IMG/VR virus record: IMGVR_UViG_3300014914_000030
Span: 1-28,549 of that record
Length of the DNA stretch: 28,549 bases
Strand: one strand, 5' to 3'
Every line of letters starts with the position of its first letter. Positions within the stretch are counted from its first letter, which is position 1. Of the stretch, positions 1-28,549 are shown piece by piece. The notes under the pieces were generated by a model that worked only from the letters and a program-made list of their open reading frames with translations, did not search any database and was not told the DNA's origin. The position numbers and the translations under genes were made by a program.

Positions 1-123
1 AGGATTTTGTGGTTGTATGTCGAGGATATTGAATTTTTAATTACGGAAAGCTTGAAATTACAAAAGCTTTAGGCATGAGAATAAGGAGTGGTCAAGTCTA
101 TAGCAGTAGCAGAGGAGAGAAGG
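1..123. repeat. Left inverted terminal repeat (123 bp)
   Basis: Bases 1..123 are the exact reverse complement of 28427..28549; the match breaks at 124 (A versus G). Confidence 0.98.
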
Positions 124-494: not shown

Positions 495-691
495 AGTATC
501 CTAAGCTCAAGAGACCGTCTAGGCGTTGCTACCAGACCCATGCCTACTGTAGAAGGTGCGGTAACTGGATTCCGAAAAGTCAGCTAGACATGTCTAATCC
601 TAGATGTCCAGTATGCGGAAATAGGTTTCTGAGATTTAAGCCTAAGCACAACCCCTTCAAGGAGAAGTACGTTAGCTACATTGAGGTCTAA
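491..691 (+). CDS. Small zinc-ribbon protein (Rpo12-like pattern)
   Basis: YCRRCG-x13-RCPVCGNRFL; ATG at 491 overlaps the upstream stop (ATGA). Confidence 0.7.
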   Translation: MKYPKLKRPSRRCYQTHAYCRRCGNWIPKSQLDMSNPRCPVCGNRFLRFKPKHNPFKEKYVSYIEV

Positions 692-909
692 GGGTCTTCA
701 AGTAGGTCTTTGGCTTCCTTGATTACCTTTTCCCATTGTTTTTCTATTTTTTCTGGATTAGTCTCATAAGTCTCCCATAACTCATCTATTGCGTCTATGA
801 GTTCTCTGAACTCCTTGAATTTCCTTCTTGCTTTCTTGTATTTTGCTCCTAGATAGATTGAGGCTACTAGGAGTATTAAGGTGATGATTTGCAGTATTAT
901 TTGCTCCAT
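688..909 (-). CDS. Small membrane protein (N-terminal TM plus charged helices); possible egress protein
   Basis: Hydrophobic IILQIITLILLVASIYLGA then a basic/charged helical tail; GGGGAG SD upstream. Confidence 0.7.
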   Translation of the reverse strand: MEQIILQIITLILLVASIYLGAKYKKARRKFKEFRELIDAIDELWETYETNPEKIEKQWEKVIKEAKDLLEDP

Positions 910-940: not shown

Positions 941-1765
941 TCAGATACTTATACCTTCAGAACGCCATTTATCAAAGTATTTCTTGTAGCCAGTTGCCTC
1001 TTCGTATTCCTCTGCACTCAAATCTCTTAGATTTGCCCCTTTATACTTGCCAGTTTGTATGATTCTACTTGGTCTTTTGTCTGGGTTGTCTCTTGCTTCC
1101 AATATATTAAGCAGATTTTCAACTGGAGTTATTACTGTTAGCCTTTCTATTGGGAAGTTTGTTCTTGGGTCAACTGCTAGTGGTGTGTTTTCCTCAAGCA
1201 TTATGGCTGGAATGTAATCGTTTAGCCTATGGTCAAAAACTTCACAAGCATAGGAGCTTAAGGATTTGATTCTTGAAGGAAGTGAAGTTTGCAGTTCACG
1301 TTTCCATGCTGGGATACTAGGATTATTGAATCGTTTAGGTGTCCATAAGGGTTCACTTAGCTTAAATCCACTATAACCATAAACCCCAGTATGAGCATCG
1401 CCAGTATTTTGATAGAAAGCTACTGAACCGTAAAGGGAGTTTGTTAGCACTTTCATAGTTCCTAATGTCTCATATCTAACTAGATGTCCATAATTAGGGT
1501 TGTCTGTTCCTTCTCTAAATCTATCTTTATGACATCTACGTGTTGTTCCATCATAATCAAAATACATTATCGTAAGCTGGTAGCCTACTCCTATATTGTA
1601 GAGAGACCAGTCAATCCATACCAGCCATGTTTCGTTTGGTGGTGGTTGTATATCTACATAAGTTGTACTACCACTAGGAACGCTAATGCTCCCTTGAGTC
1701 TGTTTGATTATTGCACTCCAGAATGGGAATTTTGGTGGTGGGGGTAGTCCATGCCAAAGGCTCAT
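941..1765 (-). CDS. Putative virion/adhesin protein with N-terminal beta-sandwich
   Basis: 274-aa ORF in an operon; N-terminal VDIQPPPNETWLV motif shared with 2818..3111. Confidence 0.7.
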   Translation of the reverse strand: MSLWHGLPPPPKFPFWSAIIKQTQGSISVPSGSTTYVDIQPPPNETWLVWIDWSLYNIGVGYQLTIMYFDYDGTTRRCHKDRFREGTDNPNYGHLVRYETLGTMKVLTNSLYGSVAFYQNTGDAHTGVYGYSGFKLSEPLWTPKRFNNPSIPAWKRELQTSLPSRIKSLSSYACEVFDHRLNDYIPAIMLEENTPLAVDPRTNFPIERLTVITPVENLLNILEARDNPDKRPSRIIQTGKYKGANLRDLSAEEYEEATGYKKYFDKWRSEGISI

Positions 1766-1780
1766 TTCTCATCTCTCCTA

Positions 1781-2149
1781 TTAGATTTCTTCCATTATTT
1801 GGTATATGAATGTGTATGGGAATGTTCTTAGGTCTCCAGCCGTTTGGGTTATTGTTACTCTGAATTTTCCGTTGTAGGGTACTGTTTGGCTTGTGATTCT
1901 GACTACTGGGACTTCTTGTGCGTCTTTGAAGGTTAGTTTGTCTTGTAGTCTCTGGTTTGTTCCATCTACTGCAACATAGACTTTGATGACAACTTCATCT
2001 CCAGATTGCATGTTTGCTAGGTCTATTGTTCCTTCGATGATGTAGTCATCATCTTGGTCTGGTAGGTTGATGAGGTCTGTTTCCGTGTTTAGGCTTTCTG
2101 GTGTAACTGAGCCTTGACTACGTACTTTGTCTTTAAATCTAACTACCAT
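1781..2149 (-). CDS. Beta-rich putative virion structural protein
   Basis: 122 aa, alternating beta-strand pattern, co-oriented with tail-collar-like gene. Confidence 0.65.
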   Translation of the reverse strand: MVVRFKDKVRSQGSVTPESLNTETDLINLPDQDDDYIIEGTIDLANMQSGDEVVIKVYVAVDGTNQRLQDKLTFKDAQEVPVVRITSQTVPYNGKFRVTITQTAGDLRTFPYTFIYQIMEEI

Positions 2150-2159
2150 TTTTGGGTTA

Positions 2160-2735
2160 TCACCTTGACATTTGTACGTAGTATCTTATTGTGAGTGTGT
2201 CTCCAGCATCCCAATCTACTGGTACGGCTGAGAATACCTTTCTTGCTAGCATGTCTCCACCAGAGCTTGCATTGAAGATTCCAGTTTCTGATATGTTCAT
2301 TGAGCCAGACAGACCGTCATCTTTTGAGAATGTAGCTTCTAGAAGGGCTGTATCATCCGTGATTGTTGTGGTTGTTTGGGATACTGAGGCTGATTTTCTG
2401 GCTACTTCGTATTCTAGGGCTGTGTCTGTAGCTGATTCTGAGGTTGTTCCAGAGCCTATGGCTAGGTAGCCGAATTTGTCTTCTGTTAGACCAGCAAAGA
2501 TTAGTCTGACCATGCAAGCTAGACCTACGTTAGTTATGATGTTCTTTCTAAAGTAGAAGTCTCCTTCTTTTGCTGGAAAGCTTGTCAAAATTGGTACTGG
2601 ATTTCCTTTCATTATTGCTTTTGGTGGTGCTCCAGCCTTGTATTTGATGTTTCCGTTTTTGTCTCTGACTATAATTTCTATCCATCCTTGTACTTTTGTT
2701 GTGTCAACATCTTTGGGAATCTTCTTTTCAGTCAT
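2160..2735 (-). CDS. Phage tail-collar fibre-like protein (DUF3751-like)
   Basis: NIITNVG...YLAIGSG...TDTALEYEVARK...ISETGIFNASSGGDMLAR...GDTLTIRY follows the tail-collar consensus order. Confidence 0.75.
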   Translation of the reverse strand: MTEKKIPKDVDTTKVQGWIEIIVRDKNGNIKYKAGAPPKAIMKGNPVPILTSFPAKEGDFYFRKNIITNVGLACMVRLIFAGLTEDKFGYLAIGSGTTSESATDTALEYEVARKSASVSQTTTTITDDTALLEATFSKDDGLSGSMNISETGIFNASSGGDMLARKVFSAVPVDWDAGDTLTIRYYVQMSR

Positions 2736-2763
2736 GATTCACGACCAATAAAGCAATTATTAA

Positions 2764-2785
2764 GAAAGAATATTTAAATTCTTTC
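2764..2785. promoter_or_regulatory. Palindromic bidirectional BRE/TATA promoter
   Basis: GAAAGAAT-ATTTAA-ATTCTTTC has 8-bp inverted arms around a TTTAAA core, about 40 nt from each of the divergent starts 2735 and 2818. Confidence 0.65.
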
Positions 2786-2817
2786 GGAGTTAGATTCAAG
2801 GTTAGGGGTAAAGCACT

Positions 2818-3111
2818 TTGGCTGTAGGAGACGTAGTTTCTGACCTTGTTTCAGTATCAGCTAATGGAACTTTAGACATTCAGCCACCATCTGGAGAAGA
2901 GTGGGTTATCCACAACATCTACCATGAGTATGACATAGAAGTAGTCTTTACTGATGGTACTAATGAGTTGTCTTTCTTAACGCATGAGGGGAAAGGTGTT
3001 CTTTCAAAATTTGCTTTCCATGTTAGGAATGGTTTGTGGATTAGGGTTAAGAATTTGGATTCTGCAAATTCTAGGCTTATTGGGTATGATGGAGTGGTAA
3101 CCAAGGCATGA
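2818..3111 (+). CDS. Small beta-sandwich putative virion protein
   Basis: 97 aa, LDIQPPSGEEWVI motif; stop overlaps next start (ATGA). Confidence 0.7.
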   Translation: MAVGDVVSDLVSVSANGTLDIQPPSGEEWVIHNIYHEYDIEVVFTDGTNELSFLTHEGKGVLSKFAFHVRNGLWIRVKNLDSANSRLIGYDGVVTKA

Positions 3112-3533
3112 ATGACATAATTACTCCAGAGACCCTTTTGCAGAGAATCGTTATAGCCTTGAAGTTTGGCTCTGAAGGGGCTACAACTACAAGCACAAGC
3201 TATGTTACGATTGCTGATAGTGATATTGCATTTGACCCTCAGAAAATTAAGAAAGCTATGCCTAATCGTAAGCTCTATGCCAAATTCATTTATCATTTAA
3301 AGAACGATACGGATGGTGAGAAAACTTACGCTAGGATTTATAGGCAAAATGCTGGGACTCCAGTTGATGGGAGTGAGGTTTCTGTTACTGGTGCTGGATG
3401 GGGGATAGTGGAAACTGATTGGATAGATTTTTCGGATGAAAGTGAGGAAAGCTATCAAGTTCAGATGTATGTTACTGGTGGTGTTGGAGAATACAATAGC
3501 ATTATTATGTTGCTGACTAATATTAAGTTCTAG
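3108..3533 (+). CDS. Putative receptor/carbohydrate-binding beta-sandwich virion protein
   Basis: TTTSTSYVTI, beta-rich, translationally coupled to neighbours. Confidence 0.6.
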   Translation: MNDIITPETLLQRIVIALKFGSEGATTTSTSYVTIADSDIAFDPQKIKKAMPNRKLYAKFIYHLKNDTDGEKTYARIYRQNAGTPVDGSEVSVTGAGWGIVETDWIDFSDESEESYQVQMYVTGGVGEYNSIIMLLTNIKF

Positions 3534-3535
3534 CT

Positions 3536-4849
3536 ATGATATGCTTGGTTAGTTTACCGTTTAAGGTGAATCTTGTTTCTCCTTTGAGTTTAGCAATTTT
3601 GAAGGCTTTAATTCCAGAATATGATTCTGTTTGTGTAGATTTATCCCCAGAGTTTAATCAATGTTTCATGAGATGGGTTTTAAAAGACAAGATTGAGGAA
3701 CTCCATGAAGAGACCTATCGTAGGGATTTTTATCCAGTTGAGTTATTGTTAAAGGGAGAGGGAGATTCCGAGTTATACAGCATTTGTCATAGCATGGCTG
3801 ATAGGATTCTTTCGTATGACCCTAAAGTGGTGTGCTTTTCTGTTCAGCTAGGCAATATTGGGACTAGTCTAACTGTCGGCAAAATCCTCAAAGATGAAGG
3901 AATAAAAGTTATTTTTGGTGGGAGTGCTTTTCTGTGGAAATCCAAGATTTATGCAAGAATGTTTCCTTGGATTGATTGTGTTGTAGAGGGAGAGGCTGAG
4001 CCAGTTTTTAGGAGTTTAATCCATAAGGTTATAAAGGGATACAAAGTTCAGAGGTTCATCATTAGTCCTATGCTTCTTGACTTAAATGAGTCGCCTATTC
4101 CAGATTACGGAGACCTAAACTTAGATAATTACCAACTTATAGGCATTGAGACTCAGAGAGGTTGTGTCAATAGGTGTTCTTTTTGCAATAATAGATTTTC
4201 ACAGTTGTACGAAGTTTATAGAGAGAAAAAAGTTGAGAGAGTTAAAAGAGAACTTGAAATCTTGAAGGAATATAACAAGCCTTTCTATTTTTGCGATAAC
4301 ATCACAAATCCTAATAGGAAGAGGCTTATTTCGTTATGTAAGGCTATAGCTCCATTAGGCATAAAATGGATGGGGGAGTTTTTGCCTAGAATTAGTTTTC
4401 AAGAGGCATATTGGTTATGGAAAAGTGGTTGTTTTTCCGTTACTTTAGGAGTTGAAAGCCTATGCGATAGAACCTTGAGGAAAATGGAGAAGCCTATCAC
4501 AGTTAGGGATATTTTAAATTCCATTGAAGCCCTAAGCATGTTTGGAATAGACATTCAAGTAAATCTAATTATTGGTTACCCTAGAGAGAGTCTGCTTGAT
4601 TTCTTGCAGACGGTTGTAAGGTTGTTTAGGGTGGAAAATAAAGTTAAGAGGTTTCTTTTTTCTGAGTTTGTAGTACCTCAAAAATCAAAAATTTACAATA
4701 ATCCAGATAAATACGGAGTAAAATTGCTTTCTAAATGTGAAAACAGTATTTTTTCAAGAGCTTTTCAATTAAAAAGTGAGTGGGAAAGAAGAAAGCAGAA
4801 ATTCTTATTAATTTTTATGGAGCTTCTCTTCAATAGGGAGTCTTTATGA
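3536..4849 (+). CDS. B12-binding-domain radical SAM protein
   Basis: ETQRGCVNRCSFC (CxxxCxxC); N-terminal PLSLAILKA, VIFGG, VVEGEAE typical of cobalamin-dependent class B radical SAM; LGVES and IIGYPRES in the barrel. Confidence 0.92.
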   Translation: MICLVSLPFKVNLVSPLSLAILKALIPEYDSVCVDLSPEFNQCFMRWVLKDKIEELHEETYRRDFYPVELLLKGEGDSELYSICHSMADRILSYDPKVVCFSVQLGNIGTSLTVGKILKDEGIKVIFGGSAFLWKSKIYARMFPWIDCVVEGEAEPVFRSLIHKVIKGYKVQRFIISPMLLDLNESPIPDYGDLNLDNYQLIGIETQRGCVNRCSFCNNRFSQLYEVYREKKVERVKRELEILKEYNKPFYFCDNITNPNRKRLISLCKAIAPLGIKWMGEFLPRISFQEAYWLWKSGCFSVTLGVESLCDRTLRKMEKPITVRDILNSIEALSMFGIDIQVNLIIGYPRESLLDFLQTVVRLFRVENKVKRFLFSEFVVPQKSKIYNNPDKYGVKLLSKCENSIFSRAFQLKSEWERRKQKFLLIFMELLFNRESL

Positions 4850-5049
4850 AGGTAGCACAGTTCCGATTTGCTATTAGTCAAGAGGGTGGTGGAGAACACG
4901 TTATGTACAACATGGCTAGAGTTCTGAAGGCAAGCGTTTTAGCTTTTGCTGTAACATCAGGAAAACTAAAAAAGAAAGGATATATCAAGGAGATAGCCTC
5001 TGATGTTGACAAGTTGATTCTGACACATAATCGTTTGGTAAAGGTGTAA
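4846..5049 (+). CDS. N-terminal fragment of a GT4 glycosyltransferase
   Basis: MKVAQF...GGGEHVMYNMARVL is the canonical GT4 N-terminal beta/GG-E/helix motif that the downstream ORF lacks. Confidence 0.7.
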   Translation: MKVAQFRFAISQEGGGEHVMYNMARVLKASVLAFAVTSGKLKKKGYIKEIASDVDKLILTHNRLVKV

Positions 5050-5059
5050 AAGTGGTCTT

Positions 5060-6025
5060 ATGGAAACGTACACAAAGAATGAGATTGAATCAATTTTGAA
5101 ATTAAGAAGGCTCTTCAGAGATGAGATTCTAAAGGAATTTGATGGGGTTGATGTTGTTGTTTTGCATTGTCCTTGGGATTTAGAGGTTTTTGATGGAGTC
5201 AATGATAAGGCTGTTGTTTTGTATGAACATAGAGCTTGTAGATTTGCAACTTTCATGTTTGATGAGATAATCAAGTATGTTGAGCCTCTACGTGCAAGAT
5301 TAGTTATTCGTGATAGAGGGTGGGTTTTGCAGAAGCATAAAGAGTTGTTCAAGAAGGCTGATTTGATTATTGTTAATAGTAAGTTTATTCAAGAGCAAAT
5401 GCTGAAGTGGTTCGGAATTGAGACCTATGTTTGTTATCCACCTATTGATTTGAGGGTTTTTCGACCAGTTAAGAATCCAAGCAGAGATTTCTTTCTTTCC
5501 GCACAGAGGGTTAACTGGCAGAAAAGAATTGACCTTCAGATTGACGCTTTTCGTGGTCTGAAAGAGAGGCTGATTATTGTCGGTAGCCCTAATGAGCCAG
5601 AGCCTAATCCTACATTGGTAGAATTAGCTAAGGATTGTCCCAATATTGAGATTTTAGGTGGTGTGAAGTTAAAGGAGCTTGTTAATTTAATGGCAAATGC
5701 TAAGGCTGTTATTCAAACTGGTTACTATGAGGATTTTGGATTAGTCCCAGTTCAAGCTTTGGCTTGTGGTACTCCAGCTATAGTGGTTGATGAAGGGGGA
5801 TTTAGAGAGACCATTCATTCCCCAAAGCTTGGTGTCAGAATAAAAAAGCCTTATCTGGAAAACTTAAGAAAAGCTGTTTTGGAGTTTGATATTAGCAGAT
5901 ATGACCCTAAGATATTGAGGGAAGAAGCTAAAAAGTATGGGTTTACGGAATTTAGAAAAAGATTCAATAAGTTACTTAAACTTGCTGTGAGGAAACATGA
6001 GGAACGATATAATTTACGTAGATAG
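5060..6025 (+). CDS. GT4 (GT-B) glycosyltransferase, main part
   Basis: IIVNSKF, YPPID, KRIDL, EDFGLVPVQALACGTP, GGFRETI. Confidence 0.92.
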   Translation: METYTKNEIESILKLRRLFRDEILKEFDGVDVVVLHCPWDLEVFDGVNDKAVVLYEHRACRFATFMFDEIIKYVEPLRARLVIRDRGWVLQKHKELFKKADLIIVNSKFIQEQMLKWFGIETYVCYPPIDLRVFRPVKNPSRDFFLSAQRVNWQKRIDLQIDAFRGLKERLIIVGSPNEPEPNPTLVELAKDCPNIEILGGVKLKELVNLMANAKAVIQTGYYEDFGLVPVQALACGTPAIVVDEGGFRETIHSPKLGVRIKKPYLENLRKAVLEFDISRYDPKILREEAKKYGFTEFRKRFNKLLKLAVRKHEERYNLRR

Positions 6026-6524
6026 GGAAAGAGGTCTCAGAGTTAGAGAGGCTGATTTAAGTAAGGTCGAAGATTTGAAGATTTTAGCTAGAGCAATCAA
6101 AAGCGATTTTTTAGCTGGTAGAGAGACTCCAACTGCGGTAAATGACCCTTTCTACAGCAAGTTCTGGAGCTATTATCTAGAGCTAGGCTGGGATATGTTC
6201 TGTTATCATCATAACCCTACAAAAACTAAATTTTTCATTGTGCTTAAAGACATGAGAACGGTTGGGTTTGCCCGTGTTAAAGAACAAAAAATACTGGGAA
6301 ATAAGGTCTTTTATCCAACGATTTATGCTAATGAGCTTGAGTATCCTTGGAGTGAGATAACTAACGATATAAGGGTCTGCATTTTTAATATGTTAAGAAG
6401 ATTTGGTTTTGATAGAGTTTTTATTGAGCTTCCTTTTGGTCATGAACTTAATAGTAAGCTTCCTTTGAGGAAGATGGTAGTAAGATTTAAAGAGTTAACA
6501 GAAATATGGGAGATGGGTTCATGA
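5997..6524 (+). CDS. Hypothetical protein, GNAT-like fold
   Basis: LRVREAD..D start and KFFIVLKDMRTVGFARV beta-hairpin resemble GNAT; acetyl-CoA motif not clear. Confidence 0.5.
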   Translation: MRNDIIYVDRERGLRVREADLSKVEDLKILARAIKSDFLAGRETPTAVNDPFYSKFWSYYLELGWDMFCYHHNPTKTKFFIVLKDMRTVGFARVKEQKILGNKVFYPTIYANELEYPWSEITNDIRVCIFNMLRRFGFDRVFIELPFGHELNSKLPLRKMVVRFKELTEIWEMGS

Positions 6525-7420
6525 CTTATGTTGAGCTATTGTTTAGGGTAAACCCAAAATTTCGACTCAAAGCTGACAAAGTTAGAGATATTTTAAATAA
6601 GAGGTTAGAACTTGAGAAAATACCGTTTGTTTTTGCTATTCATTCCATTACGGTTATGTCTAAGTGGTTAAGCGTTATTGTCGAAGTACCTAGGATTTTG
6701 GAAGTAAAGCCTTATGTATTGAACTTAAAATTCTTAGCAATCAGCCTTGGTGGTTTTGTTATGGATTCTCTTCTAGATTATGGTGTTAGATTTTTAACTT
6801 ATGAAGTGCATGGGTTGACTAGTTCTCTAGTTTATCATAAGGATTGGAGAAAGGAGAAGGTTGCTTTATGTGTTATCGCAAAGGATGAAGAACCCCATGT
6901 AGCAGACTTCATGAAATGTGTTGAGGGATGGTTTGATGATATTGTTGTTGGGGTAGATACCAGAACTGTGGATAGTACTTGGGATAGGTTTGCAGAAAGA
7001 GGGGCTAGGTGCTTCTATATTGATTGGGAAGACCATTTTGGTGAATTTAGGAATAGGACTATGAAATTTGTTGCTCCAGAGATAGATTGGGTTTTCTGGT
7101 TGGATGTTGATGAGTACCCAGAAGATAGGCTTCTTGAGAATTTGAAAGGTTTAGTTCAAACGAAAATTTATGATGCGTATTCTTTCATTAGAGTTAATCT
7201 GGAAACAAAAACTGAAGAGAGGGTTGTTAGGCTTTTTAGAAGGTCTAAGGGGAAGTGGGAAGGGAGAGTTCATGAATCTGTTTCTGGTATTGATTCAAAG
7301 AGGATTTGTGAGACAGACTTTAAGATTTTTCACATTCAGAGATGGATTAAAGAAGGTGGAAGTGTAGCTGAGGAACGTAATGCATTTTACCGTAAACTAG
7401 AAAATATGGATTCAGCCTAG
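6506..7420 (+). CDS. GT2 (GT-A) glycosyltransferase with extra N-terminal domain
   Basis: VALCVIAKDEE, WEDHFGEFRN, WVFWLDVDE (DxD), RLFR...WEGRVHE. Confidence 0.88.
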   Translation: MGDGFMTYVELLFRVNPKFRLKADKVRDILNKRLELEKIPFVFAIHSITVMSKWLSVIVEVPRILEVKPYVLNLKFLAISLGGFVMDSLLDYGVRFLTYEVHGLTSSLVYHKDWRKEKVALCVIAKDEEPHVADFMKCVEGWFDDIVVGVDTRTVDSTWDRFAERGARCFYIDWEDHFGEFRNRTMKFVAPEIDWVFWLDVDEYPEDRLLENLKGLVQTKIYDAYSFIRVNLETKTEERVVRLFRRSKGKWEGRVHESVSGIDSKRICETDFKIFHIQRWIKEGGSVAEERNAFYRKLENMDSA

Positions 7421-7442
7421 AAGATTCTAGGTGTAGCGTCTC

Positions 7443-9656
7443 TTGAGCATTACTATAAGAGCATTAGATGAGTATGGAGAGTTTTCGTTTAACGGTATTA
7501 ATGAGTTTGGTCTTCAGAGGGTTGGGTTTCTTGTTGAGTTTGGTAGCCGTGTAATTGTTCAGCAAATTGAGGCTGTTTTTACGGATTATGCTGTAGGAGA
7601 ATACATTATCCAGACTATTCACGGAATGTTTGTGGAAGTTGTTGAGACGGTCATTGTAGCTGAGTATCTGAGAAAAAGGTCTGAAAAGGTGATGGTTGAT
7701 GTAAGCATAGGGTCAGATTATCTGAGAAAGGCTACTCTTAAGGTCTTTACTGACAGTAGCATTGTTTCTGATAGGATTATAAAAGAGGCTATTAGATGTT
7801 TTGTTGACTCTGTGGTTTCAAGTGATTATGTACGGAGAGAGGTCAGTAAAAGTATTTTGGACTTGTCCAGAGTTAGCGATTGGATAGGGAAGACTTTAGC
7901 TAAAGTGCTTGTTGATTCTGAGGTTACGGTTGATTGGATTTCTAAGGCTATTTCTAGGAGCTTCATAGACTCCAGCAAATCCTATGATTATGTCAGTAAG
8001 GCTTCAATTAAGAGTTTTAAGGATGTAGGAAAGGGAATTGATAGAATTTCAAAAAGTGTCGGCGTATCAAGGCTAGATACGGTTCTTGTCTCTGATTGGA
8101 TTTCAAAAGAGTTGCTTAAGGCTGTTTTGGATTTAGGTAAGGTTGCTGATTGGGTCAGCACTTTAAAGGCTAAAATTATTGAGGTAAAGGATGTTGTGTT
8201 TCCAGACTACTCCATAGCTAAAGATTCTGTACTGGTTAAGAGAGATTCAAGCTTAATTAGTGATTTCTACAGTAAGAGTGTTGAAAAGGTTGCTACTGAC
8301 TCTGGGGTTATAAGTGATAGAGTGTCTCTTGCGTTTTCTAAAGTTCTGGTTGATTCTGGTGTTGTAAGCGATTACTTCAGTAAAGCTATTTCCAAAGTAG
8401 CAAGAGACATAGGAAAGGGAGTGGATTGGATTTCTAAGGACATTTTGGCTTCTATAGTTGAAAGTGCAAGGGTTTCTGATTGGGTTTCAAGAGATATGGT
8501 CTATTCGCTTATGGATTCAATTTCTGTAGCTGACTATATTAGAAGGGAGTTCAGTAAGAGTTTCAGAGATTATGTGGTAGGCGAATACGTAATTACAAAA
8601 ACTGCTACTCTGCACAGAAGCTATGCTGATGTTGTCAAATCGGTTGACTTTGTTTCTAAGGGTCTTTTCATCCCTCTGAAGGATACAGTAATAAGCTCAG
8701 ATTACCTTGTGAAAGAAATATCAAGAGTTGTTTCTGATGTCGCAAGAGTCCTCGATTGGATAGGTAGAAGGGTTGCAGTTACTGTTTCAGACTTAGTTAA
8801 AGGTCTAGATTATGTCAGTAAGAGCCTTGCAGTAAACATTTCTGATTTGGCTAAGGCTATTGATTGGATTGTTGTTCCTACGGTTAAGTTGATTGTTGTC
8901 AAGGATGTTGTGTTTCCAGACTTCTCTACAGCTAAAGGAGTTGAAAAGCCATTTAGAGAGGTTATCTCCGTCATTGACTTGAAGGCTGTTAAGGATATTG
9001 CTAAGAGATTTGTTGATTATGTTATAGTTAGAGACCAAGCAATTAGAACTAGGATTATTGAGGTCTTTGACCGTGTTATTGCTGACTTTGAGGTTGTCAA
9101 GGGCTTAAGTCCAGCTATTAGGGATTTGGTTAAGTCGGTTGATGTCATTACTAAGCTTAGATATACACTTACTGGAATTGATGTTAGACGTGTCTATTTC
9201 CACAAGTATCTAGGCGATATTATTGAGGATACGGATGAAATCAATAGGGTTGACTCTTCTAAGAACTTGCTGAACATGATTAAGAATTTGGCTAGTAAAA
9301 TGGGGGTTGCAGATGACCCATACATTAGTGCAGATATTTCTAAGCTTGAGGAAATCGTAGGGACAATGGAGTACGTTAAGGATGGAGAGTACGTTTATGC
9401 TAGGCATGTTAATGTGTTTGTGGATTACATGACCTATGCCATTGATGTTGTGCAGTTGCTTTATGATAAGTGGAAGTCTGCTAAGGGGACTAGTCTTCCA
9501 GAGGTTGAGTACTGGCTTGAAATGGCTAAGGGAAGAAAGGATTTAATGCGTACTGTCAAGTTTGGTGATATTGTTCTGACTAGAGACCACAACTTGATTA
9601 TAGATACTTTGAAGCCCTTAGAGTGCAGTATCAGAGTTATGGATAGGGAGTGGTAG
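7443..9656 (+). CDS. 737-aa fibre-like protein with 18-aa repeats
   Basis: Over 25 units such as DWIGKTLAKVLVDSEVTV / DWISKAISRSFIDSSKSY / DYFSKAISKVARDIGKGV, then a distinct C-terminal domain. Confidence 0.8.
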   Translation: MSITIRALDEYGEFSFNGINEFGLQRVGFLVEFGSRVIVQQIEAVFTDYAVGEYIIQTIHGMFVEVVETVIVAEYLRKRSEKVMVDVSIGSDYLRKATLKVFTDSSIVSDRIIKEAIRCFVDSVVSSDYVRREVSKSILDLSRVSDWIGKTLAKVLVDSEVTVDWISKAISRSFIDSSKSYDYVSKASIKSFKDVGKGIDRISKSVGVSRLDTVLVSDWISKELLKAVLDLGKVADWVSTLKAKIIEVKDVVFPDYSIAKDSVLVKRDSSLISDFYSKSVEKVATDSGVISDRVSLAFSKVLVDSGVVSDYFSKAISKVARDIGKGVDWISKDILASIVESARVSDWVSRDMVYSLMDSISVADYIRREFSKSFRDYVVGEYVITKTATLHRSYADVVKSVDFVSKGLFIPLKDTVISSDYLVKEISRVVSDVARVLDWIGRRVAVTVSDLVKGLDYVSKSLAVNISDLAKAIDWIVVPTVKLIVVKDVVFPDFSTAKGVEKPFREVISVIDLKAVKDIAKRFVDYVIVRDQAIRTRIIEVFDRVIADFEVVKGLSPAIRDLVKSVDVITKLRYTLTGIDVRRVYFHKYLGDIIEDTDEINRVDSSKNLLNMIKNLASKMGVADDPYISADISKLEEIVGTMEYVKDGEYVYARHVNVFVDYMTYAIDVVQLLYDKWKSAKGTSLPEVEYWLEMAKGRKDLMRTVKFGDIVLTRDHNLIIDTLKPLECSIRVMDREW
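8187..8922 (+). repeat. 22-bp exact direct repeat pair in fibre gene (8187..8208 and 8901..8922)
   Basis: AAGGATGTTGTGTTTCCAGACT occurs twice, 714 bp apart, both encoding KDVVFPD. Confidence 0.85.
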
Positions 9657-9659
9657 GGC

Positions 9660-10157
9660 TTGGGGCTAAAGCTCAATTTGGGTTGTGGATTGGATAAGAG
9701 GGAAGGTTATGTGAATATTGATGTTAGGGAAGATGTTGAGCCAGACATGGTTATTGATTTAGAAAAGGAGCTTCTGCAAAGGTTTGAGGATGAAAGTGTG
9801 GATGAGATTTTGGCTAAGGATTTCTTGGAGCATTTAAGCTGGAGAGTTGTTGAGACCTTTCTTAGGGATTGTCATAGGGTCTTGAAGCCTAACGGTAGAA
9901 TCTATATTCAGACTCCAGATTTGGAAGCTATTGCCAAAAAGGTTATTCTTAATCCCAATTTCAAGTTCGGAAGTCTCTATGGCTTTAAGGCTATTAGCTA
10001 TTGGGTTTATGGTGGTCAAGAGTACCCAGAGAATACTCACAAGTCTGGTTTTACAATGAGTAGTTTAAAACGGTTGCTTGAAGACATTGGTTTTGAGGTT
10101 TTGGAGTTGAAAAATGATAGTGGTACGAATATTGTTTGCTGGGCTAGGAAGCCCTAG
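9660..10157 (+). CDS. Class I SAM-dependent methyltransferase
   Basis: LKLNLGCG...GYVNID, FEDESVDEI, FLEHL, RVLKPNG. Confidence 0.92.
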   Translation: MGLKLNLGCGLDKREGYVNIDVREDVEPDMVIDLEKELLQRFEDESVDEILAKDFLEHLSWRVVETFLRDCHRVLKPNGRIYIQTPDLEAIAKKVILNPNFKFGSLYGFKAISYWVYGGQEYPENTHKSGFTMSSLKRLLEDIGFEVLELKNDSGTNIVCWARKP

Positions 10158-11942: not shown

Positions 11943-12281
11943 CTAGAATCTTATTGCTAACCACCAGAGCTTAACGTTATCTGACCCACTTGCTGGTGCA
12001 GATTTGAAGTGTACGGTTATGTAGGTGTCATCAACTTCCCAGTAGTCTATGTCTGGTAGGTCTGCTATGGCTTTCCCTACAAGGGCTACTGTAGGTGCTT
12101 GTGATAGTCCGTGAGGTATTTGGAAGCTTGTGGTTACTCCGTCTCCAGAGAATGTATATGTTCCACCATTTCTCTCTGCTAGGGTTCTTCCGTCTAGCTC
12201 CTCTAGTGCGTCAACTACCTTGTTCCATTCTTCTGGTGTGAGTATTTCTGTACCCTTGTAGGTTAAGCCCCATTTTGACAA
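11943..12281 (-). CDS. Small fibre/adhesin subunit
   Basis: N-terminal ILTPEEWNKVVDAL helix; C-terminal GDGVTTSFQIPHGL..AP..ITVHF..AP beta domain seen in viral fibres. Confidence 0.65.
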   Translation of the reverse strand: MSKWGLTYKGTEILTPEEWNKVVDALEELDGRTLAERNGGTYTFSGDGVTTSFQIPHGLSQAPTVALVGKAIADLPDIDYWEVDDTYITVHFKSAPASGSDNVKLWWLAIRF

Positions 12282-12283
12282 GT

Positions 12284-12475
12284 TTAGCCTCTCCTTTGCT
12301 CTCTTAGTGGTCTAGGAGTTGGGCTTGTTCTTGGTCTTGGGGCTGTTTGTCTTGCTCTTCTCATATCTACTTTGATTGCCTCTGCTATTTTGGGTTCTAT
12401 CTGCTTGTAGAGTTCCGTGAATGATTTGGCTAATTCTTTCGGTCTAGTCCTTCTTTCAGCCATTTTAACCACCAT
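12284..12475 (-). CDS. Small basic protein
   Basis: Arg/Pro-rich tail; fills the gap between co-oriented genes. Confidence 0.55.
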   Translation of the reverse strand: MVVKMAERRTRPKELAKSFTELYKQIEPKIAEAIKVDMRRARQTAPRPRTSPTPRPLREQRRG

Positions 12476-15400
12476 ACATAGCTCTGCGTTTCAAGTATCT
12501 AGCTTTTTTCATTCCAGCAATAGACTTGTAGAACATAATCTCATAGTCATCTAGTCCGTATTCTCTTAGGGCTTCTAGCTCTGCTAGGAACTCCTCTTCT
12601 GTTATCACGTCTTCTACGAAGTCATTGATTAGTTCAGTTATGTATTTGCGTACTTCATCCATGATGGGTTTTAGCCTAATGAATTGTTCCCACATAGCTT
12701 TGATGACTTGTTTCTGTTCATCTTCTATGGGTAGTGCGTCTATCATCTTTTCAAGTTGACCCATAGCATAGTCTCTTGCTTTTGGTGAGTACTCTGCTAG
12801 CATGGTCATTCTGTCAACATCGCCTATGAGTTCTCTCCATGCAACCTTTATTCTTTCATAGTTGCTTGTCTGGAATAGAAGCTCTATTTCCTTGTCTGTG
12901 TAGCCTACATCCTTGAGTTTTGATAAGACTTCTTTGTAGTCTTCCTCTTTTAGCATGAAATAGACAAATAGGTCTTCGATTCTACTGTACATTTTCTTGA
13001 TGTCATCAATTACTGGTTTGAGGTCTATGTATTTAGCCCAGATTACTTGCCATTCTTCTGGTATTTTTCTTGCGGTCATTACTTCATCGAAAAATTCTCT
13101 GGCTTCTGGTACGATTTCGCATATTGTTGCTAGCTGGGAAGGTGTAGGTGCGTATTCTCTTTGAGCTATTCCAACTAGGGCTTCTGCAATTCCCTTTAGG
13201 TATTGGTATTCGTAGTCTGTGAGCTTTGCTCCTTGTTTTACGTACTCTATGATTTTGTCTGCGTCTTCTTTTGAGACCACTCCATAGGCTAGCCTATACA
13301 TTACGTAGCCTAGAAATCTCTGTGTCCAGTAGCGTACCCTTCTGATGGTGAATACCGTTCTCCAGATTTCTAGGCTATAGACGTAGGGTCTGAAGTATTC
13401 CTCTGTAAATTGTAGCTTCATTTCATTTGGAAGCTCTGTCCCAGTTATCAATGCATAGTCATAGGCGAATATCTTGTTTACAGCCTCTATCACCTTGCTT
13501 AGAATGTTCTTGTATTCATCATAGCTATCTATTATCCATTCTGAGTATGCTCTGCTTACTTCTCTGCTTGTGTCTCTGAGTATGTCTAGGCTTCTGTCCA
13601 TTAAGGCTCTAAGCTCTAGGAGTTTTCGTTCTGCTGGTAGGAACATTACTGGAAGGTTTACCCATCCAGCCTTCCATTCCATAGCTTCTGTATCGAAATA
13701 GGCTACTAGGAAGCTTGCTTTGATTATTCCAGCTAGTAGCGTTTCTAGTGCTTTTGTGTTCCAGAATCCTTCCTTGAATAGGTTTATGAATCCAGTTCTG
13801 AGTATTGTTCTTTCATCTGCTAGGGCGTTCATTGATTCTGCTATGGCTGTAGGGACAACCCAGTATGGGTGTAGTCCAGTTGCTTGTAGGGTTCTACAGA
13901 ACTGTGCTAGGTTCATCATTACTTTGCTTGTCGGTCTTCCTTCAATAATTGCTGTAGTGAACTTTTTGATTGGGTCTGATAAGGCTACGTCTTTGCTTGC
14001 TAGGTATTCGTAGATTCCCCATTTGACCATCCATCTCTGGTCTATTTTTGTTGGTATGTCTGCTATTGTGTCTATGTATATGAGGTTGTCTGATGTGAAG
14101 TTTGGTAACCAGCTAAATCTTGCGTAGTCATGCCATTTCATGTAGGTCTTTAGTGCTGAAAGCAACATTCCAGCTTGGAAGTTAAGTTCAGTTGGGCTTA
14201 TTGGTGTGAATGCTCCTAGCTCTTTGGCTCTGGCTTCAAGTTCCTTTTTCTCCTCATCTGTTAGGGTTACCCATAGCAGACCAGCAATTCCTCTTGTTGT
14301 GAAGTCCCATAGTCTTTCTGGTGGTGGGTATCTGAAGTGCAGTAGGTAGTATAGGTATGCTATGTCATCTGTCATTCCTCTTGTTCTCATGGCTCTTTTG
14401 AACTCATCTAGCTGTAGGATTATGTCTCTGACCATCATTCGACATAGGTCAGAGGCTGAGGGTAGGGAGTGTACTAGGCTTAATGGAATGTTCCTCTTCC
14501 TTCCGAATCTATCATAGATAGAAATCCAATCATCTAAGCTGTAGCTGAACATCCACCTTAATGCTTGGTCGGAGTAGCCGTAGAGACCATAGAAATAGTT
14601 AGCCCATTTGAGTACTTCAGCATAAGACTCTCTGGGAGCTATATTGACTAGGTTTCCTTCCGCATCGTATTCAAATAGGTAGTCTATGTGTCTTCTTGCA
14701 TATTCTAGAATTACGTCTTCTCTGGGGATTTCAACTGGTACTAGGTTTCTTATCATGTAGTTGACTAGTCTGCTTACTGGTCTAGTGAACCATATTGCAT
14801 ATCCATAGACTAGTCCTCTGCCAAATTCCTTTATGTATTCCATCATTTCTTTGCTGAATGTTGTTAGTGTTGAGCCTAGAGCTTTTGCAAAGTTGAATGT
14901 GGTATCTACTCCTAGTCCTAGTGGTCTGAGGTTTATCCTTAGATTCCATTCTAGGTCGCCTAGTGCTTTTCCAATTGCGGTCATAATCCAGCTAACAAGT
15001 CTTGTTGGTAACTGTCCGTATAATGGAAAGGTCATCAGACCCAGAGCATAGACAATTGTCGTTCCTACTTGCTCAGATATTTCCTCTTCTTTTGGTGCTA
15101 TTCCCAGAGAAGACATTACCCATCCTATAAGACTCCCTAGCACATCTTGTGCTACTGTTCTGGTTAGGTCTCCTACTCCACCAAGTATCCATTCAAAAAA
15201 TTCCTTTATTGGAGTGGTGATTAGCGTAAAGGCATTCCATATTCCAGAGAAGAATCTGAATAATGCGTCTCCCATGAAGTTAAAGAATTGTGTAAATACG
15301 TTTGATATGAAATCCCATGCTCCTTGTATTGCTGAGACAATCCATTCACCTAGTGTTTGGAGACCGTTCCATATTGTTTCTCCAAGCCATGTTAATCCTT

Positions 15401-16118
15401 GAACTAGTGGGGAAACTATGTATGTGTTAGCCCATCCTATTGGGTCTTGAATTAGTGCTATGAATCCTTCAGCTATTCCAGAGAAGAAGTTTCCTATCCC
15501 AGTAAAGATGTCTTTGAGCCAGTCTGGAAGCATGTTCCATATTGCTGAGGCTAGTCCACCTAGTGCGTCTGAGATTGGTTTTGCTATATTATCCCAGAAC
15601 CATTTGGGAAACCATTCTGGGAACTTCAGTATTGCGTTTATGAATCCAGTTAGGGCTGAACCTACTTGACTTACTACGTTTCCTACTCCCTCTAGAATGC
15701 TCGTTAGTCCAGTATAGACCGTTCCAGCTATGGTTACGGCTGTTTCTGAAATTGTGCTCCAAATCGTGTTTACTCCACTAGAAATTGTGTCTAAAATTGG
15801 TTTTATTACACTATTTATGAAGCTTTCAATTCCCGAAGTAATCCATGAAGCAACTGAATTGAACATTCCAGTTAGCCAGTCTTTTAGCTGACCTAGAGGG
15901 TCTAAGATTCCAGCAGTACTGCTAGATATGATGTCTAGGTTAATGACTTCTATGGCTTCTTGCTCTGTAATGACTTCCATTCCAGAGACAACATATACCT
16001 TGTAGAAGTCTGCGTTTTGGCATTGTTCAATGTATGCTTGGGCTAGTATTTCCCCTAGTTTTTTGATGTCTTTTAGTGAAATGTCAAGTATTGATTCTTC
16101 CTCTTCAATATTGCTCAT
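12465..16118 (-). CDS. 1217-aa large virion protein (terminal fibre / tape-measure-like N-terminus)
   Basis: Largest ORF; N-terminal W/F-periodic amphipathic helices, helical C-terminus; size and position parallel the roughly 1070-aa rudivirus terminal fibre protein. Confidence 0.75.
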   Translation of the reverse strand: MSNIEEEESILDISLKDIKKLGEILAQAYIEQCQNADFYKVYVVSGMEVITEQEAIEVINLDIISSSTAGILDPLGQLKDWLTGMFNSVASWITSGIESFINSVIKPILDTISSGVNTIWSTISETAVTIAGTVYTGLTSILEGVGNVVSQVGSALTGFINAILKFPEWFPKWFWDNIAKPISDALGGLASAIWNMLPDWLKDIFTGIGNFFSGIAEGFIALIQDPIGWANTYIVSPLVQGLTWLGETIWNGLQTLGEWIVSAIQGAWDFISNVFTQFFNFMGDALFRFFSGIWNAFTLITTPIKEFFEWILGGVGDLTRTVAQDVLGSLIGWVMSSLGIAPKEEEISEQVGTTIVYALGLMTFPLYGQLPTRLVSWIMTAIGKALGDLEWNLRINLRPLGLGVDTTFNFAKALGSTLTTFSKEMMEYIKEFGRGLVYGYAIWFTRPVSRLVNYMIRNLVPVEIPREDVILEYARRHIDYLFEYDAEGNLVNIAPRESYAEVLKWANYFYGLYGYSDQALRWMFSYSLDDWISIYDRFGRKRNIPLSLVHSLPSASDLCRMMVRDIILQLDEFKRAMRTRGMTDDIAYLYYLLHFRYPPPERLWDFTTRGIAGLLWVTLTDEEKKELEARAKELGAFTPISPTELNFQAGMLLSALKTYMKWHDYARFSWLPNFTSDNLIYIDTIADIPTKIDQRWMVKWGIYEYLASKDVALSDPIKKFTTAIIEGRPTSKVMMNLAQFCRTLQATGLHPYWVVPTAIAESMNALADERTILRTGFINLFKEGFWNTKALETLLAGIIKASFLVAYFDTEAMEWKAGWVNLPVMFLPAERKLLELRALMDRSLDILRDTSREVSRAYSEWIIDSYDEYKNILSKVIEAVNKIFAYDYALITGTELPNEMKLQFTEEYFRPYVYSLEIWRTVFTIRRVRYWTQRFLGYVMYRLAYGVVSKEDADKIIEYVKQGAKLTDYEYQYLKGIAEALVGIAQREYAPTPSQLATICEIVPEAREFFDEVMTARKIPEEWQVIWAKYIDLKPVIDDIKKMYSRIEDLFVYFMLKEEDYKEVLSKLKDVGYTDKEIELLFQTSNYERIKVAWRELIGDVDRMTMLAEYSPKARDYAMGQLEKMIDALPIEDEQKQVIKAMWEQFIRLKPIMDEVRKYITELINDFVEDVITEEEFLAELEALREYGLDDYEIMFYKSIAGMKKARYLKRRAMYGG

Positions 16119-19046: not shown

Positions 19047-19421
19047 CTAGTAGGCTATAGCCCATCCACAGACTACGTTAATGATTTCATCACAGATGTC
19101 TGAGTTAAGTCCATAGGCGTTCACGAAGTAAGTCTTCAGAGCCGTAGCGATTGTCTTTGCTGAGTCTCCAGACTGGTGTAGGACATGTCTATAGAGCTTG
19201 GTGGCAAATGCCAAATAGGTGGCTCTTAAGCCACCCGTTACACCATAGTTGTCAAGGATTGGTCGAACCATGTCCCTTACCGTTCCGATTGCGTTGAGTC
19301 CAGCTTGTGCTCTGTCAAGGGCTACACTCTGAACATCTGTGAACCTTGTGCTAATTACTGTGGGGTTGAACTTCGCTTGGTATTTCTTGTACATGTCAAG
19401 ACCGTCTCTATAGAGGGGCAT
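19047..19421 (-). CDS. Major capsid protein, SIRV2/rudivirus-type (Adnaviria)
   Basis: KYQAKFNPTVIST, LDNYGVTGGLRATYLAFATK, LKTYFVNAYGLNSDICDEIINVV align with recalled rudivirus MCP motifs (KWQAKF..NPTVAST, YGITGPNRAIYQGFGLK, LKGYYISAFNANPQVLDAVVNII); AAGGTGA SD. Confidence 0.9.
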   Translation of the reverse strand: MPLYRDGLDMYKKYQAKFNPTVISTRFTDVQSVALDRAQAGLNAIGTVRDMVRPILDNYGVTGGLRATYLAFATKLYRHVLHQSGDSAKTIATALKTYFVNAYGLNSDICDEIINVVCGWAIAY

Positions 19422-19521
19422 TTTCCTTCACCTTTTCTTTTTTCTTACGAAAGCATTAAAAGGGTGGATTACATTAAAGGTAATTGCAAAGATTGAACTA
19501 GTGTGGGGTACTTTATTAGCC

Positions 19522-19899
19522 ATGCAGAAGCTTGAAGTAAAAGAGGAAGAGTTTGACGAAGCTTTAAATCTGGAGTACAGAGACGCTAGGAAGAGAGCTA
19601 TTGATAGTGCTCTTTATTTGGTTAAGAAGGAATTTCATTGGGTTTTGAGGTACTACCAAGCTAGGATGAATGAGCTTTTGGTTCGTGATGGGATTAGAAT
19701 TAATGAAAAGAGTGAGATTAGGATTGAGGGAAACAAGATTATTATGACTATTGAGGGTGAGATTACTGAGGATACAATTAAAGAAGCTACTGATGTGATT
19801 TTGAGAGCAAAGAGGAGTATTCTATCACGTAGGACTAATAGGCGTAAAAAATACAAGGCTGGGAGTACAGAATTATTGAGTACGGTAAAGGGTGGTTAA
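19522..19899 (+). CDS. Hypothetical protein, basic C-terminus
   Basis: ORF divergent from MCP; ATG at 19522 likelier than GTG at 19501. Confidence 0.7.
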   Translation: MQKLEVKEEEFDEALNLEYRDARKRAIDSALYLVKKEFHWVLRYYQARMNELLVRDGIRINEKSEIRIEGNKIIMTIEGEITEDTIKEATDVILRAKRSILSRRTNRRKKYKAGSTELLSTVKGG

Positions 19900-25021: not shown

Positions 25022-25876
25022 CTAGACCACCGCAACTACTGGGCTTAAAATCTTGTGTAGCTCATCAAACATTCTGTTCTTGGTTACAATGTCTTGACGG
25101 ACATTATGCCAAATCCTCTCGGTAACATCATTGTAGGTATCCCAGACGGTCTTGGACTCATCGAACCACACAAGCTCAGTTCCTTCCGTCTTAATGTAAG
25201 GTGGTAACAGCTTTCTTGGAAGTCTGCTTTTAGCTATGCTCTCAGCAATTTCCTCATTAAGCTGAAGCTCAACCATCTTACGATAAGCCTCTAACACCTT
25301 CTCCATAGCATTGATTACATCCATTGTACGTTTCAGAATATTATCCATGTCAACCTTCAAGCCCTTAGTGTGCTTGTGGTAAAACCTCGCAAGCTCTCTG
25401 TAGCCCATGAAAACACCATTAGAGCACATTTCTCTATATGTGAATCCAGTAACGCTAAACGCTAGTGTTCCATCAATGCTGTTTCTGAAGGCAAATCCAA
25501 TCTTGCACCTATCCCTTCCGTCTATCTCATGCCATTCTGGGAGAGTATAGACCAAATAGACCTTCCAAGAATCCTTGCTGAAATAGGCGTTACCCCACTC
25601 AGTAGGTAGCCTAGTCTTCTCAAGCAGAGGCTCTGCATTCAGCCTACTAGCTATTTCATCAGCTACTTGCTTGACAACCTCATTAGGAAGAACTTGATAG
25701 CCCCTACCGACAATTGCTACAAGCCTTCCGTTCTTGAGAATAGCCTTGTAAGGTGTCTGCTTGTCATTGTATTTTAGGTATGCCTCTGTAATGTTGTATT
25801 CTTTCCAAGTCTCATCTATTTTACCTACATCAAATACAATCTTCATCTCGGACACGGCTACATCCCCCCTTTTCAT
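25022..25876 (-). CDS. DUF932/DUF945-like phage/plasmid protein
   Basis: IVGRGYQVLPNE, FRNSIDG, YREMCSNG, TVWDTYNDVTE match the family motif order. Confidence 0.8.
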   Translation of the reverse strand: MKRGDVAVSEMKIVFDVGKIDETWKEYNITEAYLKYNDKQTPYKAILKNGRLVAIVGRGYQVLPNEVVKQVADEIASRLNAEPLLEKTRLPTEWGNAYFSKDSWKVYLVYTLPEWHEIDGRDRCKIGFAFRNSIDGTLAFSVTGFTYREMCSNGVFMGYRELARFYHKHTKGLKVDMDNILKRTMDVINAMEKVLEAYRKMVELQLNEEIAESIAKSRLPRKLLPPYIKTEGTELVWFDESKTVWDTYNDVTERIWHNVRQDIVTKNRMFDELHKILSPVVAVV

Positions 25877-28357: not shown

Positions 28358-28426
28358 CTTAATCACCGTAATATACTTAAGTGCATTAGGTGTATATAAG
28401 CATTGTGGTCTAGTCCACAACCAAAC

Positions 28427-28549
28427 CCTTCTCTCCTCTGCTACTGCTATAGACTTGACCACTCCTTATTCTCATGCCTAAAGCTTTTGTAATTTCAAGC
28501 TTTCCGTAATTAAAAATTCAATATCCTCGACATACAACCACAAAATCCT
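28427..28549. repeat. Right inverted terminal repeat (123 bp)
   Basis: Exact reverse complement of 1..123. Confidence 0.98.

Follow-up and report, generated by a model that had tools for sequence, protein, structure and literature searches.

A gene pair of rod-shaped archaeal viruses encodes a homologue of a tailed-virus tail-fiber domain and a jelly-roll partner

The window analyzed here is a 28,549-nucleotide (nt) stretch of DNA, positions 1 to 28,549 of IMG/VR virus record IMGVR_UViG_3300014914_000030. We studied a group of open reading frames (ORFs) in its left arm, positions 941 to 3533. One of them (2160..2735, minus strand) encodes a protein of 191 amino acids (aa) that is a genuine homologue of a tail-fiber and baseplate domain of Caudoviricetes. 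The similarity is far beyond chance. The gene lies next to that of a 122-aa jelly-roll protein (1781..2149, minus strand), and the two form a core pair throughout a clade of rod viruses from hydrothermal sites and hot springs. An earlier reading of this DNA, called the original prediction below, had described a module of tailed-virus type that was acquired across realms and grafted onto an Adnaviria rod. The module is truly in the genome, but it is not peculiar to it. All five ORFs that had been described were present. Relatives carry only three of them, the 191-aa, the 122-aa and, less widely, a 274-aa product; what is conserved is the pair, joined by a third gene that can be exchanged, rather than a module of five genes.

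The family of the 191-aa protein was determined by profile and sequence searches. In PHROG it matched phrog_5417 (E = 2.4e-19), phrog_4176, annotated as 'tail fiber protein' (2.3e-12), and phrog_20420, annotated as 'virion structural protein' (2.1e-8). A tblastn search against deposited viruses returned 15 records, all of tailed viruses. They included Thermus phages P23-45 and P74-26, where the genes are annotated as 'baseplate protein' and 'virion structural protein', and the Nitrososphaera provirus Pro-Nvie1 ('putative tail fiber protein'). At E ≤ 1e-3, an exhaustive HMMER search returned 1685 representative clusters. Most of the 150 matches listed were proteins of 145–200 aa that aligned to residues 64–190. 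PDB sequence searches with the protein and with its profile found nothing.

The sole Pfam match of the protein was PF23140, Gp80, with an E-value of 0.0023 and 18.7 bits, which is under the gathering cut-off of 27 bits. The original prediction had named DUF3751, now PF12571, and a direct hmmscan against PF12571 gave no match even at E ≤ 1. When 141 relatives were scanned at E ≤ 1e-3, PF23140 was matched by 53 of them (best 7.1e-17) and PF12571 by 4 (best 1.2e-4). The DUF3751-like motif order was nevertheless visible at the profile level. Members of the P2 gpH class (PF12571) appear to share the conserved motif order, and the family profile aligned with the N-terminus of P2 gpH (residues 1–150) over 95 collinear columns (hhalign E 1.6e-4, probability 51%). 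P2 gpH itself scores PF12571 at 2.3e-58. The 191-aa family is Gp80, which is apparently related to PF12571, although the protein does not match PF12571 directly.

The protein consists of an N-terminal β-hairpin (residues ~14–34), a variable linker (~35–63) and a conserved core domain (~64–190). The domain makes up the whole protein, which ends with it; there is no fused shaft, and the next gene is the separate 122-aa jelly-roll gene. In gpH-type proteins, the domain is instead the attachment end of a fiber protein of about 670 aa. The superfamily proposed for the ORF was thus right, whereas the exact family and the architecture were not, as the domain is free-standing rather than the end of a long fiber. 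In many relatives, the linker (columns ~50–95 of alignment A1) contains paired cysteines or histidines that are absent from the window copy, and the pattern suggests a small metal-binding or disulfide knuckle.

The 3D structure of the 191-aa protein was modeled using AlphaFold 2. The model had a mean predicted local distance difference test score (pLDDT) of 73 and a predicted template modeling score (pTM) of 0.72, with residues 42–63 disordered. Foldseek identified the HFTV1 tail (9h4p, E 3.9e-6) as the best match among solved structures. The matching 953-residue chain is the baseplate hub gp44, and the profile of the 191-aa protein aligned with residues 403–508 of gp44 with an hhalign probability of 81%. 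The match to fiber I gp80 of phage GP4 (8jou) had a probability of 0.99 but an E-value of only 0.03 and a TMt of 0.49, with the model at pLDDT 73. A library of viral models gave 71 matches at E ≤ 1e-3. These included stand-alone 150-aa proteins of uncultured tailed phages (TM up to 0.87), proteins of Xanthomonas and Stenotrophomonas phages annotated as tail fibers, haloarchaeal tailed-virus proteins and many 'tail collar fiber protein' entries (probability 1.0). In the proposed Foldseek check, the predicted fold thus resembled that of tail-collar fiber proteins and the HFTV1 hub and, more modestly, that of GP4 gp80.

Known systems use this fold in three ways. In the podophages GP4, VP1 and A1002, small dimeric subunits are strung by β-strand augmentation on a 'rope' protein to give a chain-like fiber, and gp80, gp40 and gp41 are 140–171 aa long (PMC13730344). 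These subunits (Ralstonia GP4 gp80, PDB 8JOU; Pseudomonas A1002 gp40/gp41; VP1 gp11) are likewise stand-alone single domains of similar size. The window protein differs in scoring below the Pfam cut-off and in having an extra N-terminal hairpin and linker, and the window virus has no tail, nozzle or rope protein. In the archaeal tailed virus HFTV1, the fold lies inside the baseplate hub that carries the fibers (PMC12494034). The same domain is used in that tail tip (gp44, PDB 9H4P); there it is an internal domain of a fiber-carrying hub of 954 aa, whereas here it is a 191-aa protein of a rod-shaped virus. The third use is that of the P2 gpH class, where the PF12571 fold plugs long fibers onto the baseplate. 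In each of these uses in tailed viruses, the fold serves as a connector at the end of the particle that faces the host.

The genome that carries the pair was identified from its ends and its capsid gene. The window termini are perfect inverted repeats of 123 nt; the left repeat (1..123) pairs with 28427–28549 at 100% complementarity. A SIRV2-type major capsid protein is encoded at 19047..19421 on the minus strand (PF12193, E 1.3e-20). It was 33–36% identical to 40 Rudiviridae records and had no other match in the collection of phages and archaeal viruses. The HK97 capsid, portal and terminase families had no match among the window ORFs scanned, as had been predicted. A megablast search with the window showed no nucleotide similarity to known records of phages and archaeal viruses. 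The window thus combines a SIRV2-type capsid protein and linear double-stranded DNA having inverted terminal repeats with the lack of any head or packaging family among the ORFs scanned, the features of Adnaviria and Ligamenvirales. Because of the terminal repeats, the capsid protein, a match to SIRV2 P1070 (described below), the lack of HK97 capsid, portal and terminase matches among the ORFs scanned and the lack of nucleotide similarity to deposited viruses, the window is the full linear genome of a rudivirus-like virus that belongs, as a distant member, to Ligamenvirales. The assignment to an Adnaviria rod virus was therefore correct.

By tblastn, one copy of the capsid gene was detected in the window and no second one. 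The ORF at 19501..19899 was tried as a second capsid paralogue and was rejected (BLASTP E 1.8; no paralogue by tblastn). A related IMG/VR contig (L012:6817-7701) contains two divergently arranged SIRV2-type capsid paralogues, 62% and 28% identical to the capsid protein of the window.

The 191- and 122-aa genes were adjacent and in the same order in all 11 related loci, which came from different samples, assemblers and databases. The 191-aa protein had 189 homologue clusters, with 60–97% identity among the 120 listed. Relatives were binned in metagenome-assembled genomes (MAGs) of Archaeoglobales, Ca. Culexmicrobium, Ca. Terraquivivens and Thermoprotei from the Guaymas Basin and other sites. 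In these relatives, the pair neighbors a P1070-like gene, a 112-aa gene and a glycosyltransferase gene. One relative is L014, a 20.9-kb contig in an Archaeoglobales MAG bin, in which ten compared proteins are syntenic with the window. There, the homologues of the 191-, 122- and 274-aa proteins lie between a P1070-like gene and the PF12193 capsid gene, which is 1.2 kb away. Between the window and L014, identity was 72% for the 191-aa and 75% for the 122-aa protein, 48% for the capsid protein, 47% for the giant P1070-like protein, 42% for the 274-aa protein and 34% for the repeat protein. Diverged second copies were seen in two other loci, one of the 191-aa protein (L007:12843-13322, 52% identity) and one of the 122-aa protein (L008:7582-7947, 48% identity).

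The original prediction had named, as evidence that would overturn it, a left arm misassembled from a tailed virus. Such an assembly chimera, or else similarity by chance or composition, could account for the known-phage tblastn matches all being Caudoviricetes. Against it, perfect 123-nt repeats close both ends of the window, the GC content of 941–3533 is 0.397 compared with 0.395 for the whole window, the same gene order recurs in independent contigs, and E-values reach 2.4e-19. We give this explanation almost no weight. Misassembly from a tailed virus is excluded, because the gene order is kept in independent contigs, among them L014 with its capsid gene.

The partner of the 191-aa protein was modeled with higher confidence. 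The 122-aa protein is an eight-stranded jelly-roll in the AlphaFold 2 model (pLDDT 96.6). At TM values of about 0.5–0.6, Foldseek matched it to Bacillus Ena spore-appendage subunits and lambda tail-tip chains. Further matches were to a phage cement protein of trimeric form (7dou, TMq 0.60), to heads of the TNF/C1q type and to the receptor-binding protein of a lactococcal phage. It had 196 homologue clusters, and most of those listed are exactly 122 aa long. Four β-sandwich proteins had been proposed around the 191-aa gene; the claim was examined by modeling for one of the four, the 122-aa ORF, and was confirmed for it. Two other interpretations of the 122-aa protein were rejected. One took it for a diverged duplicate of the 191-aa protein, in the manner of A1002 gp40/gp41; the hhalign probability was 1% and the fold differs. 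The other was a match of the family profile to the Ig-like RII repeats of MpAFP (4p99, E 1.5e-4), which the jelly-roll model did not support.

The third gene of the set (941..1765, minus strand) encodes the 274-aa protein. Its family had 144 homologue clusters with 36–78% identity and lengths of 229–451 aa. The family alignment showed a conserved N-terminal motif, a conserved C-terminal tail and a hypervariable middle. With the family hidden Markov model (HMM), members were found at the third operon position only in the L014/L023 virus, and L028 had the C-terminal tail only. In L015, the family is located apart from any 191/122 pair, and in other relatives the third operon position is occupied by an unrelated gene. 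We propose that the minus-strand genes from 2735 down to 941 are one operon with two constant structural products and an exchangeable third.

Sequences outside the clade were compared to examine the relation to tailed viruses. The closest ones were on IMG/VR contigs L009 and L010, with 54% and 50% identity over the core domain. L009 contains genes for two head proteins (one major, one minor), a protein resembling prohead proteases and a minor tail protein, and L010 contains genes for the small and large terminase subunits. Because its nearest outside relatives sit in tailed-virus contigs, the domain is really shared between tailed viruses and Adnaviria. In a maximum-likelihood tree, the filamentous-virus sequences formed one short-branched clade (support 100/87), which was nested in a more diverse and poorly resolved radiation that included L009 and L010. 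A single capture from a tailed-virus pool, made by an ancestor of the virus group, would be consistent with this pattern, although the tree cannot prove the direction of transfer. Of the predicted cross-realm acquisition, the sharing is thus confirmed and the direction is not proven.

The domain was also found elsewhere in Adnaviria. Foldseek against the viral model library located the fold in the lipothrixviruses AFV9, SIFV2, SBFV2, AFV2 and AFV1. The proteins are AFV9 ORF164, AFV1 ORF274, AFV2 ORF338, an SIFV2 gp53-like protein and a 357-aa protein of SBFV2; they belong to the same realm, have the same fold and are annotated as hypothetical. AFV9 ORF164 matched the 191-aa family with an hhalign probability of 95.9% and an E-value of 5.8e-9, N-terminal hairpin included, and at 2e-9 with the HMM. 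It is about 24% identical to the 191-aa protein and sits beside ORF1170, a giant ORF, and glycosyltransferase genes. No partner of the 122- or 274-type was detectable in AFV9, which in the tree is a long unresolved branch outside the clade of the window. The proposed search for the module in other viruses thus recovered the 191-type domain from AFV9 and other lipothrixviruses as well as from the HFTV1 hub. SIRV2 had no detectable homologue of the 191-, 122- or 274-aa proteins. The domain is a recurrent, previously unannotated component of Adnaviria, and it is either ancient in the order or was captured more than once.

Two large genes elsewhere in the window may be relevant to attachment. The first (7443..9656, plus strand) encodes a 737-aa protein with an 18-aa repeat, a likely fiber shaft. 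The predicted repeat was confirmed: identity at lag 18 was 0.20, and 19 in-register units had an invariant Asp at position 3 and a near-invariant one at position 15. There are about 22–25 units, arranged as three blocks; the C-terminal domain that comes after them has no repeats. Tandem Repeats Finder reported nothing on 7400–9700; the repeat is detectable at the protein level alone. Hydrophobic periodicity peaked at 100 degrees, equivalent to five turns in 18 residues, as in an α-helix; this would suit a long shaft of helices better than one of extended strands. Homologues are 412–1194 aa long. Of the 9 relatives whose sequence reaches upstream of the 191-aa gene, 8 encode a homologue directly there. 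One of the homologues (L001:6341-9925, minus strand, 1194 aa) carries PF10102 (DUF2341). SIRV2 ORF564 is annotated with the same domain, and the shared DUF2341 links the repeat protein to this rudivirus gene, which lies beside ORF1070.

The second gene (12465..16118, minus strand) encodes a 1217-aa homologue of P1070, the presumed building block of the SIRV2 terminal filaments (PMC10848311). It matched phrog_7334 at 4.4e-13, and the match covers residues 986–1081, the C-terminal part only. The giant protein of L014 matched the same PHROG at 1.2e-14, and SIRV2 ORF1070 matched it with E = 0. The N-terminal region (~55–540) matched many PHROGs annotated as 'tail length tape measure protein' (TMP), down to 3.7e-14, and TMP genes of Paenibacillus and Lactococcus phages by tblastn; Pfam gave no match. 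SIRV2 ORF1070 (L019:20451-23663) likewise matched TMP (phrog_58, 1e-9). The TMP likeness could be a real shared membrane-active segment or a compositional likeness of amphipathic sequence rich in Gly, Ser, Ile and Trp. The window resembles SIRV2, whose virions have terminal fibers, in its P1070 homologue, genome type, capsid protein and glycosyltransferases, and it differs from SIRV2 in encoding the Gp80-like, 122-type and 274-type proteins. The gene beside the giant gene encodes the 112-aa protein (11943-12281, minus strand), which was 75% identical to its L014 counterpart and 51–65% identical in other relatives and matched no family; it could be one more of the constant structural proteins.

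Taken together, the connector roles of the fold, the linkage to P1070-like and repeat genes and the constant-constant-variable operon layout make it, on balance, probable that the 191- and 122-aa proteins are a conserved connector pair for terminal attachment structures and that the third product contacts the host. In this model, the pair would serve as the connector or adaptor of the attachment structures at the virion ends and would work with the 18-aa-repeat protein (7443..9656) and the P1070-like giant (12465..16118). The variable third product, of 274 aa here, would be the best candidate for the host-contacting part. A constant adaptor with a variable distal part is the pattern known from phage fibers, and it matches the one seen here. 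We infer, for the 191-, 122- and 274-aa proteins, their presence in the virion, location at its ends, stoichiometry and binding partner, and likewise the role in adsorption. Several observations weigh against the connector model. SIRV2, the best-studied relative with known terminal fibers, has no detectable homologue of the three proteins. The repeat-protein gene of the window is 4.7 kb from the 191-aa gene and not adjacent to it. Confidence in the 191-aa model is only moderate, with its disordered stretch at 42–63, and the matches of the 122-aa jelly-roll are generic. The high conservation of the pair and the fixed length of the 122-aa protein also suit decoration or cement, and a phage cement protein was among the fold matches.

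The last point leads to the possibility that the pair decorates or cements the helical capsid body, bound along the capsid lattice and not at the ends. Many fixed contacts would suit the greater conservation of the pair (72–75%) relative to the capsid protein (48%) and the constant length of the 122-aa protein in most homologues. The jelly-roll model resembles not only the trimeric cement protein but also the self-polymerizing Ena subunits, and in L014 the operon is only 1.2 kb from the capsid gene. However, the characterized relatives of the 191-aa family are tail, fiber or baseplate parts and not head decoration. The usual neighbor of the pair is a repeat or P1070-like gene rather than the capsid gene, and a variable third gene suits host recognition better than capsid decoration. 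A role in the capsid body thus appears unlikely. Less likely still is a chain-like fiber as in GP4, VP1 and A1002, with Gp80-type dimers strung on a rope that would be the 18-aa-repeat protein or the N-terminal arm of the 191-aa protein itself. Gp80 is the best Pfam family, the stand-alone domain falls into the size class of gp80, gp40 and gp41, and relatives encode a length-variable repeat protein (412–1194 aa) next door. On the other hand, the 100-degree periodicity of the repeat is α-helical and not that of an extended β-strand, the Foldseek likeness to gp80 is modest (E 0.03, TMt 0.49), and no two structurally similar fiber proteins are seen here, as the 122-aa partner has a different fold. 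The terminal connector pair remains the preferred interpretation.

The remaining features of the left arm surround the operon. A 73-aa protein with an apparently hydrophobic N-terminal stretch is encoded at 688..909 (minus strand), 31 nt downstream of the 274-aa gene. Its Pfam search gave weak noise only; from the spacing, it may be the last gene of the operon. Between the 191-aa gene and the plus-strand genes is a divergent intergenic region of 82 nt (2736..2817). It contains a palindromic TATA-like element at 2769–2781, about 40 nt from both divergent start codons, which is a candidate bidirectional archaeal promoter. A purine-rich, ribosome-binding-like site precedes the TTG start at 2818.

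The 97-aa ORF that begins there (2818..3111, plus strand) has one short motif in common with the N-terminal domain of the 274-aa family (BLASTP E 1e-4; hhalign probability 93% over 22 columns; HMM 3.5e-4). Beyond this motif, no relatives were detected. The 141-aa ORF (3108..3533, plus strand) had no detectable relatives; Pfam, PHROG, the PDB and phages gave no match, and an IMG/VR scan returned the window itself only. It was tested as a relative of the 122- or 274-aa family and rejected. Known phage and archaeal-virus records were also searched by tblastn with the 274-, 122-, 141- and 97-aa proteins, and no match was obtained. An antisense ORF at 2919..3296 (minus strand) is probably spurious. 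Single-protein IMG/VR scans with the capsid protein, a 441-aa protein and the 141-aa protein found little besides the window itself.

The 97- and 141-aa ORFs are part of a block of about 4.7 kb (2818–7420) between the 191-aa and repeat-protein genes. The block also encodes a B12-binding radical S-adenosylmethionine (SAM) enzyme (3536–4849; PF04055 at 8.4e-15 and a weaker match to a B12-binding domain), a GT4 glycosyltransferase (5060–6025) and a GT2-like protein (6506–7420). Because the 191-aa and repeat genes abut in most relatives, it looks like an inserted modification cassette. Apart from the capsid and P1070-like genes, much of the genome is taken up by genes for several glycosyltransferases, for a methyltransferase and for the B12-binding radical SAM enzyme. 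The right arm encodes a DUF932 protein (25022–25876, minus strand; PF06067 at 1.8e-15) and a topoisomerase-like protein (27374–28462, minus strand; phrog_6247 at 3.3e-48). The latter is also kept, at 35% identity, in the Bathyarchaeota-binned contig L015.

The builders of the terminal claws, brushes and fibers of most filamentous archaeal viruses are poorly known. A review of these viruses describes the terminal structures without assigning proteins to them, and in the literature that we searched, P1070 of SIRV2 was the only protein found to be linked to terminal structures. The protein family found here and its role in phages are known. Apparently new are the core conserved pair in rod-shaped archaeal viruses and the presence of the domain in lipothrixviruses. 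A link between Gp80-type proteins and Adnaviria was not mentioned in the literature searched, which included related metagenomic Adnaviria papers; coverage was limited, and an earlier description is possible.

A conserved pair with a tail-fiber domain, present in about 190 metagenomic lineages and distantly in lipothrixviruses, provides testable attachment candidates, and the exchangeable third gene is a candidate host-range determinant. We raise as a tentative possibility that the attachment structures of Adnaviria are built from the same kit as the tail tips of tailed viruses and that the kit is exchanged between the realms within shared archaeal hosts. It may comprise a Gp80/tail-collar-type connector, a jelly-roll partner, P1070 with its tape-measure-like N-terminus and swappable distal proteins. 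If so, the Gp80-like/jelly-roll pair would be a universal socket for host-range cassettes, possibly within a chain-like or composite fiber. A structural module with up to 54% identity is common to two realms whose capsids are unrelated, and this bears on how host-recognition modules move between viruses.

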